DNA of 63,987 nucleotides, filler included, from Pelomyxa schiedti (GCA_020536535.1; 12 parts of 12 records of this genome joined end to end with filler, not necessarily neighbours in it), one strand, 5' to 3'; shown: positions 2,435-33,089, counted from the whole stretch's first letter. The notes: a model not told the origin generated them from the sequence alone. Made by a program: numbers and translations.

Positions 2435-5400
2435 CTAGACAAAAATGTGTGCCACAGTTTGGTACTCAGTGTCACTGGGCTTCAAGAGGATAACAAAGGT
2501 GGAACTCTTCTGTAGAGAGGGCTCTCCATAGTGTGCAAATGCAGTGACTTTTACTGGTACCCGGCCATCAGCGGGACAGTAGGATGATAGAGGTGATAGC
2601 AACTTGACACGAATGTCATACCTCCCCGTTATTGCACGCTTGAGCATATACTGAACTGGTCCTGGATTGGTGTTAGAATTCCAGTCTTTTTTGTTTTAGC
2701 ACTCTGTACCATTCCCAGGGAAGTCACGGGACATAAGTCCCCCAATCTTTGTATGATTATGGAAAGGGTGGCAATTTTCGCCGGTTGGTTCACTATGTGT
2801 TTGTGAGTGATTGCCATGCCACAACCATTCATAACACAATTTTACCTCACGCACAACGAGACATCACAAGGATCATGAGCCCACTGGATTCGAACGAGTA
2901 TATCAAGAGGTAATGGCGCATTCCGAGAAACACCATCTACGCAAAGGTTTGCAGACATGTCTGGAGTAGTACCAACGCGTTGGCACTCAAACCGTTGCAT
3001 ACAGTGGAGATCCTATTTAAGGTGGGTTAGTATTCTGCCTCTTTTAGATGCGTATTGGCCATTACCATTAACGCAGGAAGTTCCACTTGCGTAAAGCGCG
3101 GGTCCCAAATTCGAGTTAATATGATGTCGGCAATTCTGGTACACTCGTCAAACTGTTGTGGTGTTGTACTGTATGTGGCCCGAAGCAAGTCAAAATAGCT
3201 TTGTGGTTCTTCGCCTCTCTCTTTGGAGATAATTTTGTATAACGCTTGAGCAATTTGCCAGCATTCATGTTCCTCCAAGATGTAGGCAACTGTATTGGAG
3301 ATATGACGGAATTATTTTTGGGAATTTTTTTCATTCTTTGCTTTAGAGGTACCTGCTCTTTGAAGTTGGTGGTCATCACGTGAAATGTCAAGAATCGAAG
3401 TAAGAATTCTTACGGCACTATCCTTGGCACCCACAGATAACAATTTTCTTCCACAAGCAAGGTAGAAGAGTGTTGAGGAATGAGGGGAATCTTTGTGTTT
3501 GGTAAACCATTCATATCTACTAGATATCGGTAACAAACAAGATGAGAAGGGGTACAAACGACAAGGTACTAGGAACATTAAATTCTAGGTAGACTTCTTC
3601 CCAAGACGCAGTGAAATCTTCAGCATTACTAATGGTGAATTCATTGCCTGTTCAAAGTCATCCCCAAAAGAGTTTATACAGGGACTTACATGAGTCTGCA
3701 AACTGAACTTCGGATTCAGGAACGTCATCATTGTGCACATAACTGTCAACAGCAACAGTGTTCGTGAGTGGCAAAAGGGATGTGCCAGTCGCAAAGAAAG
3801 AAAGAGATGTGCTGGGAACAAGAGGGGGTTGCGCAAATGAAATAACAGGAATTTCTGTTGATGTTTCTGTTTCTTTAGCTGGGCTGCGATACGCATGGGG
3901 AACGTAGATAATTGAAGGTGCGTAATTATCCACGGGAACAGAAGTGCCAGGACTAAGGTGGTTAAGAGGTTTTTCCCGAGTAAAAAAAAACGCACCCAGA
4001 AAAAAGCACACTCAGTGCTTGTAACGTTTTCACAAGAACGAAGAGAAACAATTGTGAAAGAGGTGTTACAAGATGAACTGGTAGGAAAATAAGAACCCCA
4101 AAAAAGAAGTATAGGCTCCGAAATAAGGTCTTCAGAAAATGCCCATTAGGGGGTAGTCTCTTCAGAAAGGTTGAGGAAACTATGAAATAGTGGATAGAAA
4201 GAAACTTGCGTATTAGAACTGGGTGCAACCGAAGGAGGATATTGAGACATGAGAGCAGAGAGGTCACATTGAATACTTTGAGTTAAGCGAGTGAATGACG
4301 ATTTGCCGACACCGCTGGAACCAAGAGATACCACTGGTAATTGATTAGAATAGGTGATGCTTCCTCCAGAAGGGATCAACCTTTAATAAGTGCACTACGT
4401 TTTATGAGATACGTTTGAGTAAACAAGTCACTAATGGCACTCACAACATTGCTCAGATTTTTGCAGGAGATCTCGAAAAATTTCAAACCATTTTTAGCTG
4501 CAAACTCAGAAGCCACATTATAAGACACCTTCAAGTCGAGATGAGGAGAATGTAAACTGGCAGTTGCATACTTGTCTCTTATCCTCAATATCAAGTTTAT
4601 TGCCTAATAAAACAACATAATATGGAGGAGTGCAATTCTGTTTTATTTGGTCCAGTGTGTTGCATGCATCATTGAATGATTCTATATCAGTAATATCATA
4701 CATGAGTGCAACTCCAGCCAAAGAGCGGTAATATCTAAGTCCCATTAAGAATTCAAGAAACGTTTTAAAATAGAAGTTACGCCGTAGTTATTGTTCTAAA
4801 GCGCTCATTACCTGAAGGAATATAAGAGGATCTCAAAAAGTAAAATTTGGTACCTGCTGTGTCCCAGATTTGGAATTTAGCATCTCCTGACTTTACAATA
4901 GAAAAGTCAACCCCAATTGTACACAGATGACTCTCTGAAAACTGATATCCATCCTACATAGGAATGAAGTAAGATACCCGTAGGAGTTCCTTCATATGTA
5001 TTAACCTCTATAGTTATTTCAGCCCGTGGGGGTGCTGTTGTGGAGGCTGGGGGTGCTGCTGCTTGTTCAGGTAGAGTCATGACACCAGCATAGCACTTCT
5101 TCCTTGCGCCTAGCCCACGGATACGTAGCATATCCTGTCCAGGTCTAATTTCTTTTAAAATACTAAAGGCTTCCCCGATTTTCTGTTATGCATTAGAATT
5201 TCTCTGGTAAAAAATGGCAAACAGAAAAAGCAGAGCCAAGCATCCCACCAGTCCTAAGTCTGGCTGCCTGCTTATAAAACGCTTGTGATTGCAGGGAAAG
5301 GTCTTCAGACTTTTCGACTAAATCCTCAAGACTTAGCCCACGCTGCAGAACATGATCAACTAAACAAATCTTCATTCAAAATTTTGGAATCTTCAAGCTA

Positions 5401-8400
5401 CATACTGTTTTTGTTCATTACCCCTTCTATGGCATCTGCAGTTTGATCTTCTGCAGCCCAGTTTCTTGCAACTTTAGCACGTGAACTAGCTCTCATTGCA
5501 CTTTGGGGTGGTAGTGGGAGTGCAGCCCTTTGGGGTGGTAGTGGGAGTGGTTGTGCAGTACTTTGGAGTGGTTGTGCAAAGGAAGGCGGAGCTTCAGCGC
5601 ACGCAACTTGTTGAATATCTTCGAATAGACCCGAACCCTCCTCCTTAGCCAGTAGAGTTGGTGCAGAAAGAGGCATCTGTTGAGGTATAGACCATCCAGA
5701 TATCTCTGAATCCCAGTCTTCATCATGTTCCTCTTCTAAGTTTTCTTCTTGTTTCTCCTCCTTAAGACTTAAATCTTCACCCCAATCTCCTCCGCCAATG
5801 TCTGATTCATATTCTACAGTTTCTGGCACAACCTCGCCAGTGGCTTGAGGTTTTCCCAAATTTTCACTTGGAGTGTCTTCAAAAGCTGTGGCTGATGTAA
5901 CCGTAGGAGGCGGCGGAGAGGCAGTCAACACGGGAGGTGGAGATGATGCCCTCTTTGAGCTTTTGCAGAACGCATATAGATTTTTCTTTTTAGACACACT
6001 TTTTCGCTCCTGCTGACGTTCTATTAGAGTATGTTCAAATGGAAGTGTCACCTGAGTCTTTTCTGTATGAGGAGGTTTGGTATCAGGCATGGACTTCGCC
6101 TCAGGGATTTCACTTGGTTTGGGCGTGGTCTCACCACCAAGCTCAGAAGGTGGTAATTGGGGCGCAATGTAAAGTGAATGTGGCTCATTCTCTAATTCCA
6201 TAGACAGTGCGGAAATATCATGAACCAATTCACTCCTTTGAGTGGACTGTACTTGTAAGGTGAAGTCGTCACTCCACTCAGAAGTAAAACAAGATGCCGG
6301 CACTTCCAATTTTCTTTCTTTTTGTTCTGCGTGCAATTCCTGTGTATTATTGCAAAGCCAACCTACTGCTACTTGAGGTGAGCCAAAGCGTTATGAAAAG
6401 GAACTAACACCTCCTGGGGAGGGAAACTGGACCAATTCATAATTTTCAGGCTCCTCGAAATGTTTTCCTCTACTCATGAAGTGCCATACATGAGGTTGAT
6501 TTGTTTTCCCATCGTAGGTATTATTGAACCACTCCATTTTGCTTAGCCATAAATCTTGGACATCAGTTTTTTTCTTGGAAAGTTTGTTGCCTTCTTTTTG
6601 TCTGGATTGTTCTGTACCCCACCCCGCCCCAGCCCAAAGGAAGTCAACCTCCTATTACAGATTTTGTTTTACAAACCCCTATTTATTTCAAATAGCCTGT
6701 GTATTTCAGGGAGACTCTCTTCATCAGGTTCAATGTCATATTTCAGGTATTGTTCAAGAGAGTCAAGTACGATTAAACTAATTCCTGTTGTTAAATGTGC
6801 CAAATGTGTTAGAACTACCTAGTATTTTCAGTTACAATAGCATATTCCTGTCCCAATTTGAGAATTGCTCTGCTGGTTTCAGAGGAAATGTCCAATTCAA
6901 GGTCTTCAATCTTTCTTTGTGCCCAGTGTCTTGCTAACTACATGTATTTTACAAAAATCGAATTGATTGAAGTTTTACTAATTTGGAACCGTGAACGCAA
7001 TAGTGCATATCTAGATCTACTTGAATAGTTTTTGAGGTAGCATTGGTACTGCAGAATTAATAGTGCATCAGTTTTGACAGAAGGCTTACCCATAGTACAA
7101 TAAAATTGTGAATATTGAATCAACTGTCCAAGTTGAAATTTTCCCACAAAGGATTGACATGTTTGTAGTTGGTGCCTTTGGATATACTTCCTCTAGCTGC
7201 AAAAAATTAGCTGGAGTGGATAAAGTACCATAAACCTGATTAGGATGTGACACTTGAAGAAGTTTGAAGACTGGTTTACACATTTTCAGTGCAGCAGATC
7301 GCGCATTTTCAGAGAGTAGGTTGAAGTACATTCCACTCGATCGGTGTGACCACGATCTTGTCGATGCAAGTTGGGATTTGGAAGCAAGAAAAAGGGAATG
7401 AAACTTCATAAGCAGATTACATGTCTCGACAGAAGAGGAAACTGAAAAAATGGGAACTGGAAACTCTCGGATATCATTGTCAGCCAATCTTACAGTGGAA
7501 AACCTGGAAATAATTAGAAGAAGGGAGGAACAGGAAAGCTACCCATCACTGAAAAGAATATGAAAGGAATATGACTTGCCCGAAACTGGAGATACTTTGG
7601 ATGTGAGGGGGAGAGAACTTAAGTCAGTTCCACCATCGTAGGTTAACTTTTTAAAGTTAGGTATCATTTGAAGAATGCAAAGAAAGAACTTTCTCAAGGT
7701 TTCTAAAAAGATCCTGTGAAAGAGGATATTGCACAGGGGGCTCACATATTTCATGGAAACAATACAACTACAGAAAAATTAAAAACACCAAGTAAGTTGG
7801 AAAACGTACATCAATTGTAGAATTGGGCAAAATGGAGGAAAGGAAGTTGATAAGCTGATACTCCAGAGATAAATTCTGCCTATGCCTGCTTCTGGAGCAA
7901 TCCTGATACTCCATTATGAAAAACATAAAAAAGCTAATGATCACACACCCAGAAAATACCTATGTGGATAGGGTCAAGTACACAGTCACCTGAATTACTG
8001 CTGGCTTCGATATGGGGTATTTTTATACAAAAAAAAGTCTCAGGCTTGGTTGGACTTCCCTGAACAAGACACATTTAACATTAAAAATAGTAAACTTGAC
8101 GGACTTGCTCCAGAAGAATCAATGGAACATCAATGGGCGTTGTTGGCACATGAATCACAAAAGTAGATAACTTAAGCTTTGCAAAGGGGAGGGAGGTGTG
8201 TTCCAAATTGAGAATATACTGAGTTTTCAGTTCTGGTGATTTCCTGAAAGCAGTGCCTTCCAGAAAACTAGTAAACCACCTGCCAGTACTCTTAATCCAG
8301 GGGTTCTGGTTCACCCCGAAGGGCTGATTTATCTAGTGTTTTGTTTGTTATTGTTCAATAGGTTTTGGTAATTATATACCTCCAGGTGAAGTTGGAAGAG

Positions 8401-9183
8401 GTCCAAGACAGTATTGTGATCAACAAAGTTGAACTCGTGCAAGTAAAGGAGAACTGAACCTTCATCAGGAAAAAGATGATAAAAATGAGAAGGAACAACC
8501 AGGATCCAGTGAAGATGAGTGCAGCTCATTTGTGTACTCAATCCATACGGTTCTGTACTTGTCTGGTGCGAAAGGGAAGACTCGAACCTTGAAGACATTC
8601 CCTGCTACATGCTCACAAATTGATGGTGCCCCTTTTCGTTCTCTCACCTTGAGAGGTGCAAATTTAGAGAAGAAATTAACAAAGTGAGCCAAACCCCAGT
8701 TTCAAAGGCTACACGAGCCACTTCCTTTGGGCAAACACAAGCCCTGACCATTTTGCCATCAATATCTACAGCATAACCACACACTGTGGAGCCTATATAA
8801 AAAGGGTTAGAAACTATTGTAGCACCATGAATAAAAATATAAAAAGATGAAAAACAGTAAGAACCTTCCGGCACTGGGAAAACGAGGTTCCCTGCAACTT
8901 CTTCAGAACTTGGATTTCTGAATCTCATTGAAACCTGAGTACCTAAAACACAATAATTAGAAAATTGGCATGCCTAACGCATCCCCATTGGGGGGCTTGA
9001 GTTGTAAGGTGCGTTCACCGAACAGTCATTTCCAACCCATAAGTCACACTCACAAGACAAAAAGCCAGTGACAGTGACCGACACAGACAGGGCGACCAAC
9101 GGCATGTGTGACAGCGGCGACGAGGGAGGCACGCCCTCCCTCGTCATCTCAACGCCACCGCTGCCATCCCCCTCACTAGTCAT
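2435..9183 (-). CDS. Multi-exon VIT-vWA-(acidic/Pro linker)-R-SNARE coil-circularly permuted Rab-like GTPase-TPR-DUF2135-like protein
   Basis: VIT: FRNPSSEEVAGNLVFPVPEG..VCGYAVDIDGKMV..KEVARVAFE and GNVFKVRVFPFAPDKYRTVWIEY. vWA: MIDAS-like DCSRS (~7888-7902) and YDGGTDL, followed by WAQRKIEDLEL. R-SNARE: VMNKNIDHVLQRGLSLEDLVEKSEDLSLQSQAFYKQA. Rab motifs TIGVDF, WDTAG, GNKLD and EISCK come before VVSLGSSGVGKSS. TPR region: FYLACG..AVRILTSILDISRDDHQLQR, GEEPQSYFDL, WDPRFTQVELPALM. DUF2135-like end: LPLDILVRIQW..EPTGENCHPFHNHTKIGGLMSRDF..GPVQYMLKRA. One splice junction near 4080-4200 is ambiguous. Confidence 0.8.
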
Positions 9184-9853
9184 TTCTTGTAACGGAATAG
9201 AATTAACCGTTTACTGAGATCCTAAAAGAACCCCACCCCCACTATCAAGGAACAGCACAACACGCACGCAGCACAAGTTCGATAGCAACGGAACCATAAG
9301 CAACAGTGGGCATTGACAAACTGTGGTGATTGCAGGATATCAACCACCATCCAACCTTCTTACCAGAGAAAGGGGAAAAGGAGTGTGTTGTTCTACAGTG
9401 GAGGGATACTCCAGTGAAAAAAAAACACAAAAAAAGATGACAGAATGAAACAGGAACCACAGAGCCCTAATACCCACCCGACTTACCAGATCCGAGAGTG
9501 GCCACTAGCTCTACCAACAAACAAAACCCAGTTCCCAGTCCTTTTATACCCGGAGATTTCCGCCAATCCGGACTTATGGGTCGTTTTGTTTCCGATCGTT
9601 AACGAAGGTTGATCAGAGGTTGCTGGGTCGCCCACCATGATGCTGGGAGCAAACACCAAAGAAATACTTGCGCAAGGCACAATTGTTTGATATGTTGTTC
9701 CTTTCTTTTTTGACCCTATAAAAAGTGATCACATAGAGCTGCGAGTCGGGTGGCGAGGAATGTGGATTGGGTGCTGAATCACGTGGTGTAATGGTGGGTG
9801 CTGGACACGTTTTTTGTTGTGTGATGCCAGTGGGTGGTGATTTTTTTCCCTAC

Positions 9854-9923
9854 AAAAAGTGCATCATCACTGCCCAAAATCACCACCCGGGCGGTGATTT
9901 TGGGCGGTGATGATGCACTTTTT
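9854..9923. repeat. Near-perfect ~70-bp palindrome within a cluster of ATCACC(A/G)CCC motifs (9830-9995)
   Basis: The left arm aaaaagtgcatcatcactgcccaaaatcacc and the reverse complement of the right arm, aaaaagtgcatcatcaccgcccaaaatcacc, differ at one position. Confidence 0.9.
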
Positions 9924-10113
9924 GCAGTCAAATCGGATCACCGCCCCGGGTGGTGGTTGAGCACATAAGCCAGTCAGTAAAATCACCACCCAGGGTTAAC
10001 CACAAGAAAAAAACTTTTTTTTATGTTGCTCTTAATCTAACTCGATATTTAACAGTGCTGACAGGCCAGTTAAAGCCACTATTTGTCGCAATAAGCACTC
10101 CCAAGTGTTGTGT

Positions 10114-32333: not shown

Positions 32334-33089
32334 TCAGTGACCCTCTGCAGTTACCTTTGCCTTTGGGGCATTGGCCTCCTCAGAATATATCTGGAATAGT
32401 TGGTACAAAGCCTAGGCTACCAGTAGTGAGTGCACTGGGAACGGGTACCTTGTCCTTGATGTCATCAGGCATCGGCCTCTTTTTGTCAGGCACCGCGGTA
32501 CTTTCATCATCAGCACCCTCCTGATTAATGTTACAATCAGTACTGCTTGTGTGTTAGTTCGGTACAGTATTGCCGATGTTCTTCTCTTCGTTGTCAGTCT
32601 GTTCCTGGGCGGGTTTGTCCCCTTCGCATGTAACTCTTGGTGTAGTTGAGGTTGACTCGCAAGAGGTTGGTGTTTTTTGGTCTTCGGGAGTGTCTTTCTC
32701 GACTGGGGGTGGTTCTACACTAGTATTTACTCCATCTCCCTTTCAATTGGTTAATGAAGAGGTAATACAAAAGGGAGTGCGGATACCTGCAGCTCGGTAA
32801 CAATTGAGTTGTCCACAACCCACCTAATTTCGAGTAAATATGAGAGGGAGAAACGTAAGGAAAGATACGAGTGAGATTCCAGCACTGTTTCAACAACGTC
32901 AGACTTGTCTGGGAAAAGCCTTTTCACAACATCGACAATGGCATCTCTTGTCGGACTGTCGGGCTTCTCTGCTTCTTCTTCCTTGGGAGATCTCTTTTTG
33001 CAACATTTATGTGAGCACCTTGACTTGTCCTTGCATCTGTGTTTGCAGGCCGAGCTTTCCGCTGTCGGTGATGTAGCTGCCGTTGCCAT
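32334..33089 (-). CDS. Small protein with a CxHxCKDKxxCxHxCC motif and a CUE/CoCUN-like helical motif
   Basis: N-terminal CKHRCKDKSRCSHKCCK, then spliced IVDVVKRLFPDKSDVVETVLESHSWVVDNSIVTEL. Confidence 0.55.

Follow-up and report, generated by a model that had tools for sequence, protein, structure and literature searches.

The window analysed here is a stretch of 63,987 nucleotides (nt) of DNA, filler included, from the genome assembly of Pelomyxa schiedti (GCA_020536535.1), and positions given below are counted along it. A gene on its minus strand encodes a protein of 1688 amino acids in which an R-SNARE motif of the Ykt6 type is followed by a circularly permuted Rab1-like GTPase domain. 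The motif, its expression within a longer transcript, the permuted order of the domain and the conservation of the whole arrangement in Mastigella eilhardi were observed directly. On balance, we favour the interpretation that this is a genuine, expressed R-SNARE motif derived from Ykt6, which would act as a non-fusogenic Q-SNARE-binding module, tether or regulator.

The gene occupies positions 9105-2438 (minus strand) and comprises 34 coding exons, as established by exact-match mapping of the public gene model P0001 and by RNA contigs, in eukaryotic DNA with introns of approximately 40-50 nt. P0001 is the NCBI entry KAH3731978.1, annotated as 'TonB-dependent receptor [Pelomyxa schiedti]' on a 10113-nt contig, and was recovered by an exhaustive profile search with the 45-residue SNARE exon, to which its residues 936-980 are 100 % identical. 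The mapping placed 1687 of the 1688 residues on the window, the sole unplaced residue being an isoleucine with a split codon, and all 34 exons are open and in phase. Exons were searched singly, while every whole-protein analysis was performed on P0001. Comparison against Pfam distinguished VIT (residues 4-114; 68.1 bits), Synaptobrevin (922-970; 44.6 bits) and Ras (1043-1175; 118.3 bits) domains, and the complete domain order consists of a PARP4-like VIT-vWA module, a probably disordered spacer of approximately 300 residues, the R-SNARE motif, a 70-residue linker, the permuted Rab1-like GTPase, a hydrophobic hairpin-like anchor, and a helical and beta C-terminus. Judging from the domains found, none of which supports it, the label 'TonB-dependent receptor' is wrong and hides the protein from searches. 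The sequence is public but misnamed, and no published description of the protein was found.

The R-SNARE motif and its transcript

The SNARE motif corresponds to residues 917-969 of P0001, with layers -7 to +8 encoded at positions 5460-5256. Its N-terminal half (layers -7 to -2; 5460-5406, minus strand), delimited by the Pfam match and the layer table, encodes residues 917-934 and the first base of Ile935. A long open frame (6336-5398) ends in AIEGVMNKN, and the large exon closes at 5406 with AAC AAA AAC A, followed by a GTATGT donor. The phase 1 GT..AG intron of 46 nt that is placed within the motif (5405-5360, minus strand) has its TTTAG end at 5360, and TT opens the next exon (5359-5223), giving an Ile codon (A+TT) that is split across the intron; the Mastigella transcript is contiguous there. 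The C-terminal half (layers -1 to +8; 5359-5256, minus strand) was recognised by Pfam on the exon and terminates in FYKQA, while the last eleven codons of this exon (5255-5223, minus strand), bounded by the RNA joint 5223/5182, encode neither a cysteine nor an anchor.

With the Pfam Synaptobrevin model (PF00957; cut-off 26.4 bits), the 44.6-bit match on P0001 has an E-value of 1.3e-11, and the piece of the SNARE exon at 5196-5357 alone attains 32.1 bits (E 1e-7; model positions 24-58). When the entire genome was scanned with this model, the present locus was among 21 R-SNARE matches in the assembly. The zero layer is formed by Arg941 (codon at 5342-5340), and layers -3 to +8 (M, N, V, R, L, L, S, L, S, F, A, L) follow the canonical R-SNARE pattern. 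The first-pass annotation of this DNA, made from the sequence alone, had described an R-SNARE pattern with a zero-layer arginine and a Ykt6-like FYKxA end, and had named the Synaptobrevin profile search as a check. Both features are borne out by the above matches, and the spliced peptide it quoted is that encoded by the minus strand with the split Ile codon. It had placed the coil at 5255-5430, where the motif does lie, although the true span of 5460-5256 is slightly wider.

Among solved structures, the best relatives of the SNARE exon are Ykt6 proteins (E 1.2e-4; 31 aligned residues; ~61 % identity), ahead of VAMP4, VAMP8 and Snc1. The remaining significant matches among 1.84 billion representative sequences are short fragments of the Ykt6/longin type (49-67 % identity), with the exception of a repetitive protein of 761 residues that has no aligned stretch and belongs to no Pfam family. 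A word search with the SNARE exon found nothing, and also missed the open reading frames (ORFs) of the window itself. The genome retains a canonical Ykt6 on a separate contig (C431), ending in CCNIL, to which both halves of the motif can be aligned in single comparisons (E 4e-7 and 6e-8), with different intron positions. Since both halves align to the Ykt6 of Pelomyxa itself, the coil is best read, at the level of sequence, as a copy of the Ykt6 SNARE motif.

P0001 thus shares with Ykt6 its closest SNARE motif, the FYK.A end and the absence of a transmembrane helix right after the motif, but differs in that the motif is internal to 1688 residues and is accompanied by neither a longin domain nor a CC..X lipidation motif. 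No Pfam longin match was obtained on P0001, whereas the Ykt6-type fragments P0005, P0006 and P0010 do match. Likewise, a CC/CAAX (CCxxX) motif after the coil is absent from P0001 and from its Mastigella counterpart P0024, while the canonical Pelomyxa Ykt6, P0003, P0008 and P0010 all possess it. No hydrophobic stretch directly follows layer +8, with none found on P0001 before residue 1237.

The stretch is represented in three small single-cell RNA runs and one DNA run from the same study, and contigs were aligned on positions 3500-9400. The RNA contigs show presence and junctions rather than expression levels, and cannot prove a single transcript. The RNA contig X1 record 1 (2143 nt) begins at 5260, within the SNARE exon, and continues below 3500, with joints at 5223/5182, 5005/4952, 4851/4808, 4781/4734, 4570/4526, 4381/4333, 4206/4159, 3996/3952 and 3689/3646; the donor at 4380 is accordingly shown by RNA. 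This contig unites the SNARE exon with the Rab-like, P-loop and hydrophobic exons. As it is spliced from 5223 to 5182 and onward, the SNARE exon is not terminal and the frame runs on, in agreement with the first-pass annotation. Contigs of X2 and X3 cover the upstream exons from ~8060 to 6063 and part of the large exon, with RNA contigs located at 6063-6611 and within 5470-5863. The public model P0001 matches each of the X1 junctions listed here.

The permuted Rab-like domain and the hydrophobic segment

The Rab-like core is encoded by four exons (4953-4381, minus strand), whose introns are all confirmed by RNA, and incorporates G2 (TIGVDF), G3 (WDTAGNE), G4 (GNKLD), G5 (EISCK) and helix 5. 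Strand 1, the P-loop (GSSGVGKS) and helix 1 are placed after helix 5, in the exon at 4333-4206 (minus strand), which the RNA contig X1 joins after the G5/helix 5 exon (4528-4381) through the joint 4381/4333. The Pfam Ras match covers model positions 23-159 of 162, with strand 1 and the P-loop missing. When residues 1036-1228 were compared against solved structures, Rab1A and Ypt1 were the best matches (E 9e-32, or about 1e-31). The phmmer match to Rab1A falls in two pieces, with query residues 9-134 corresponding to Rab1A 31-160 and residues 147-165 to Rab1A 4-22, from which the order G2-G3-G4-G5-G1, with a break between helix 1 and switch I, can be deduced. G1 to G5 and the Rab-family motifs are all present, with the Walker A motif at residue 1191. 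The canonical Rab order (G1-G2-G3-G4-G5) and a C-terminal prenylated cysteine were not found, and the domain is internal. The position of the coil mid-protein, before a permuted Rab, had been proposed in the first-pass annotation, and the permutation is now seen at the level of the mRNA.

The same permuted order, with an intact Walker A motif, occurs in Mastigella P0024 (residues 990-1188) and in a second Pelomyxa protein encoded on another contig, P0013 (residues 1428-1606), where the domain forms the C-terminus; the relocated P-loop segment is kept in both. In the G3 motif WDTAGNE of P0001 (window 4854-4862; residues ~1069-1075), Asn replaces the catalytic Gln, which is kept in P0024 and P0013. 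This replacement may slow the hydrolysis of GTP in P0001.

Circularly permuted Ras-superfamily GTPases have been described in cpRAS-VWA proteins, which occur in amoebozoans and other protists. These have the order G3-G4-G5-G1-G2, with helix 5 linked directly to strand 1, are RAS-like (TIE) and carry the GTPase N-terminal to a Sec23/24-trunk-type vWA domain and a zinc finger (Elias and Novotny 2008, PMC2430557). P0001 is likewise a large protein with a permuted Ras-superfamily GTPase and a putative vWA-type domain. However, its order is G2-G3-G4-G5-G1, with a Rab1-like TIGVDF preceding G3 and no G2 after the P-loop, rather than that of cpRAS, and the GTPase is located far C-terminal to a PARP4-type VIT-vWA module. 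Furthermore, no SNARE is reported in cpRAS proteins, unlike P0001. Judged by the order of its motifs, the Rab permutation adds a third kind to the two already described for GTPases, namely YlqF/YawG and cpRAS. In 2026, a survey of the small GTPases still cited only cpRAS, and full-text searches returned no paper on a permuted Rab or on the SNAREs of Pelomyxa schiedti.

The coil and the permuted domain are connected by the linker exon (5182-5006, minus strand; residues 981-1039), which carries a basic patch partly conserved in Mastigella and is unique in the genome. A candidate relic P-loop in this linker (IRGLGARKKC) was rejected, as glycines are absent from this place in Mastigella and the segment is missing from the paralogue P0013.

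Downstream of the P-loop exon, the hydrophobic exon (4159-3996, minus strand; residues 1230-1284) is the only strongly hydrophobic part of P0001 and the only strong anchor candidate, with a Kyte-Doolittle maximum of 2.03 over 19 residues. The stretch itself comprises 48 residues (1237-1284) and begins 268 residues past layer +8. The equivalent stretch of Mastigella (Kyte-Doolittle maximum 2.60) lies 269 residues past this layer. No N-terminal signal-like sequence was found in P0001 beyond a mildly hydrophobic first VIT strand. The first-pass annotation had stated that the coil has no transmembrane helix or CAAX anchor, which applies to the residues adjoining it, while the stretch at 1237-1284 had gone unmentioned. 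An additional Ras-like domain of canonical order, with a second Walker A motif at residue 1270, follows the hydrophobic stretch in Mastigella P0024 (~1262-1420) and has no counterpart in Pelomyxa. The presence of this P-loop domain past the stretch argues that both flanks are cytosolic, and the stretch, of 37-48 residues, is thus probably a membrane hairpin.

Conservation and the VIT-vWA backbone

A word search restricted to residues 900-1300 of P0001 returned P0011, a protein of 1682 residues in which Synaptobrevin and Ras domains are both present. The cluster to which it belongs is made up of Trinity transcripts from Mastigella eilhardi (EukProt EP01105), among them the 1814-residue isoform P0024. 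P0001 and P0024 are collinear in three blocks, comprising the region from VIT through the YDG-QP exon (37 % identity over 641 residues), a middle block that begins with the SNARE motif, at VMNKN/VMATN exactly, and extends through the P-loop segment (38 % over 301 residues), and a C-terminal block (40 % over 242 residues). Within the motif, ten of the twelve core layers from -3 to +8 are identical between Pelomyxa and Mastigella, against 10/27 of the non-layer positions. Such layer-biased identity is to be expected where the core of a coiled coil is constrained. An independent transcriptome yields this order in one complete ORF, which speaks for the single-ORF architecture as well as for an uninterrupted motif.

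SNARE motifs may have entered this family more than once. A paralogous VIT-vWA-like gene on contig C531 (~32714-32983, minus strand; L023:2714-2983) encodes a syntaxin-8-like Qc-SNARE motif mid-protein, at the matching position, which suggests repeated recruitment. This motif was matched to the PDB entry 1gl2_D (E 3.4e-6) and is not called by Pfam. At its zero layer a His replaces the Gln, and an exon encoding an E/R-rich coiled coil precedes it. The backbone family (VIT, vWA-like region, YDG-QP exon and C-terminal domain) also occurs without any SNARE.

The VIT domain is encoded by the exons at 9105-8501 (minus strand; residues 1-125), with a Pfam VIT match of 37 bits on the open frame 8647-8973 alone. 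The vWA-like region (8062-7543, minus strand), recognised by profile alignment to PARP4, carries the MIDAS motif DxSxS in exon 7902-7810 and a second motif, DGGTD, in exon 7646-7543. When the first 640 residues of P0001 were used as a profile, human PARP4 641-887 was matched, with DCSRS aligned to DCSSS. The similarity involves the N-terminal 270 residues of P0001 and extends from VIT to the first vWA motif. No match with the Pfam vWA models was obtained on P0001, and the vWA assignment is thus only partly supported by the sequence. In contrast to PARP4, P0001 has no PARP catalytic domain, and the C-termini show no detectable relation. P0013 is annotated as PARP4 and combines PARP, VIT and VWA_3 domains with its permuted Rab. 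Genes with major-vault-protein (MVP) repeats are found on contigs C810, C516, C352, C518, C850 and C93, and a link of the P0001 protein family to vault particles is conceivable.

The exon at 6612-6412 (minus strand) encodes a conserved 'W..W.N..YDG...QP' pattern that also occurs in three paralogous genes of the same genome, and returned nothing in a feature search of the ESM Atlas. It is followed by the acidic, proline-rich spacer of ~300 residues (6369-5461, minus strand), which is supported by an open frame and RNA contigs and is probably disordered. This spacer cannot be aligned with the Mastigella orthologue and falls outside every BLASTP segment shared by P0001 and P0024. A word search with the large exon that encodes it found no homologue, and likewise missed the ORFs of the window. 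The C-terminal region (3951-2438, minus strand; 40 % identity to Mastigella over 242 residues) consists of a low-complexity part, a part with helical repeats of TPR-like character and a beta-rich domain. No match in the PDB was obtained with a profile of the C-terminus, and for the C-terminal exon the ESM Atlas feature search provided no more than a weak lead, towards TPR-like proteins. Pfam and NCBIfam searches with the single short vWA-like, YDG-QP, hydrophobic and C-terminal exons returned no match.

Several features of the upstream transcripts were also observed. One RNA contig carries the template-switch oligonucleotide at ~8060 (8057-8060), inside the coding region and beside an acceptor site. 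The end of this contig most likely represents a truncated cDNA, while an internal start at 8057-8060 may yield a shorter product without the VIT domain. A start near 7331 and a 5' end at 8060 were rejected, as the GGG of the oligonucleotide overlaps a genomic GGG, another RNA contig bridges 8332-8104 to the next exon, and the ORF runs upstream into the VIT exons. In the region 7357-7420, X3 uses a donor at 7420, which is out of frame, in place of the donor at 7404 in X1 and X2. The intron 6410-6369 is retained in X2 record 5 and removed according to loose letters of X3. These two variants represent either alternative splicing or unfinished processing. The flanks at 1-2400 and 9200-10113 are richer in G+C (up to 58 %), with many short overlapping frames on both strands and no clear gene, although neither flank was examined as such.

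Alternative explanations and possible role

A number of observations weigh against reading the coil as a Q-SNARE-binding module. Layers -7 to -4 (W, E, A, I) are less regular than the remainder, with Glu at -6 in Pelomyxa and Lys at -4 in Mastigella. RNA contigs of the three small runs leave positions 5261-5469 uncovered, and the intron within the motif (5405-5360) is inferred from the public model, from its GT..AG ends, from the heptad register that its removal restores and from the Mastigella transcript, which is contiguous at the equivalent junction; positions 5864-6060 are likewise without an RNA contig. The protein is known in two genera only, and its conservation between them could reflect a generic need for a coiled coil rather than SNARE pairing. 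The AlphaFold model of the permuted Rab, built on a three-row alignment, has a pLDDT of 50.6 and is too weak to place the packing of the relocated strand 1; the order of its secondary-structure elements agrees with a Ras fold, and Rabs are retrieved with it by Foldseek (TM ~0.5). The model of the C-terminus is of low confidence (pLDDT 55).

The main rival explanation, which we regard as possible though distinctly less probable, holds that the coil is what remains of a Ykt6 motif and now serves as an ordinary coiled coil, which oligomerises the giant protein or pairs it with paralogous VIT-vWA proteins, and has no role with the fusion SNAREs of the cell. It would account for the imperfect N-terminal layers and for the backbone proteins without a SNARE, and the C531 paralogue, with its syntaxin-8-like Qc motif and zero-layer His at the matching position, is in keeping with it. 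However, a generic coil does not need the Arg of the zero layer or the small residues at +3 and +5 that are specific to Ykt6, all of which are kept in both genera, and only one R-type and one Qc-like coil were found rather than a full set of four. It is improbable that the motif belongs to a fusogenic R-SNARE in which the downstream hydrophobic segment serves as transmembrane anchor. While that segment is strongly hydrophobic, is part of the same polypeptide and is conserved in position, 268 residues including a folded GTPase lie between layer +8 and the anchor, and the P-loop GTPase-like domain past the stretch in Mastigella argues for cytosolic flanks and a hairpin. Least credible of all is the explanation that the architecture is an artefact of assembly or gene prediction, in which a neighbouring VIT-vWA gene, SNARE fragment and Rab gene were joined in error. 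The single-cell assembly is fragmented into 5337 contigs, and the two segments without RNA contigs, together with the fact that contigs are no proof of one transcript, could be taken to favour it. Against this, the frame is open and in phase over 34 exons, a single RNA contig runs from the SNARE exon through the Rab-like, P-loop and hydrophobic exons, an independent Trinity transcript of another genus has the same order in one complete ORF, and the permuted Rab recurs in a second Pelomyxa protein on another contig.

Fusion by SNAREs needs a motif that is closely coupled to its anchor, and the canonical motif runs almost directly into it. With 268 residues and a folded GTPase before the anchor, and neither a longin domain nor lipidation cysteines, the force of zippering in P0001 would not reach the membrane. 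As a non-fusogenic module, the coil would instead bundle with the usual Q-SNARE partners of Ykt6, and could thereby tether the membrane of P0001 to a Q-SNARE-bearing membrane or hold the Q-SNAREs back from fusion, with the neighbouring permuted GTPase as a candidate on/off control. Non-fusogenic pairing with Q-SNAREs is familiar from tomosyn and amisyn, whose anchorless R-SNARE motifs act as decoys. P0001 is likewise a large carrier of an R-SNARE motif without an adjacent anchor, for which such pairing is proposed here by inference. It differs from both in that no WD40 propellers or PH domain were matched, the motif (917-969 of 1688 residues) is not C-terminal, and a downstream anchor of its own as well as VIT-vWA and Rab-like domains are added; no sequence relation exists beyond the SNARE motif.

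A more elaborate proposal, which we advance tentatively and consider rather unlikely, is that of a covalent SNARE-Rab unit, in which the nucleotide state of the Rab1-like domain would gate the entry of the Ykt6-type coil into Q-SNARE bundles, and the hairpin-anchored giant would be a tether or brake that can be switched, at a fusion step dependent on Ykt6. The decoy next to its own Rab-like switch that was suggested in the first-pass annotation would be compatible with the favoured non-fusogenic reading, as one version of the tether or brake. The regulator is not self-contained as it had supposed, given that the module sits within a far larger PARP4-like VIT-vWA protein of 1688 residues. The sister protein with the syntaxin-8-like motif hints that the VIT-vWA giants may form a family whose members insert into SNARE complexes or mimic them.

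The specificity of membrane traffic depends on two core systems, SNAREs and Rabs, which normally meet only via separate effector proteins. R-SNARE motifs in non-canonical carriers are already known, and the interest of P0001 rests on the covalent pairing of such a motif with a Rab domain of undescribed permutation. The known range of this pairing is narrow (Pelomyxa and Mastigella), and its function is putative. With a Ykt6-type coil and a Rab1-type GTPase on one polypeptide, both conserved in two genera, the protein may provide a natural test case for the non-fusogenic use of SNAREs and for the direct coupling of a Rab to a SNARE.

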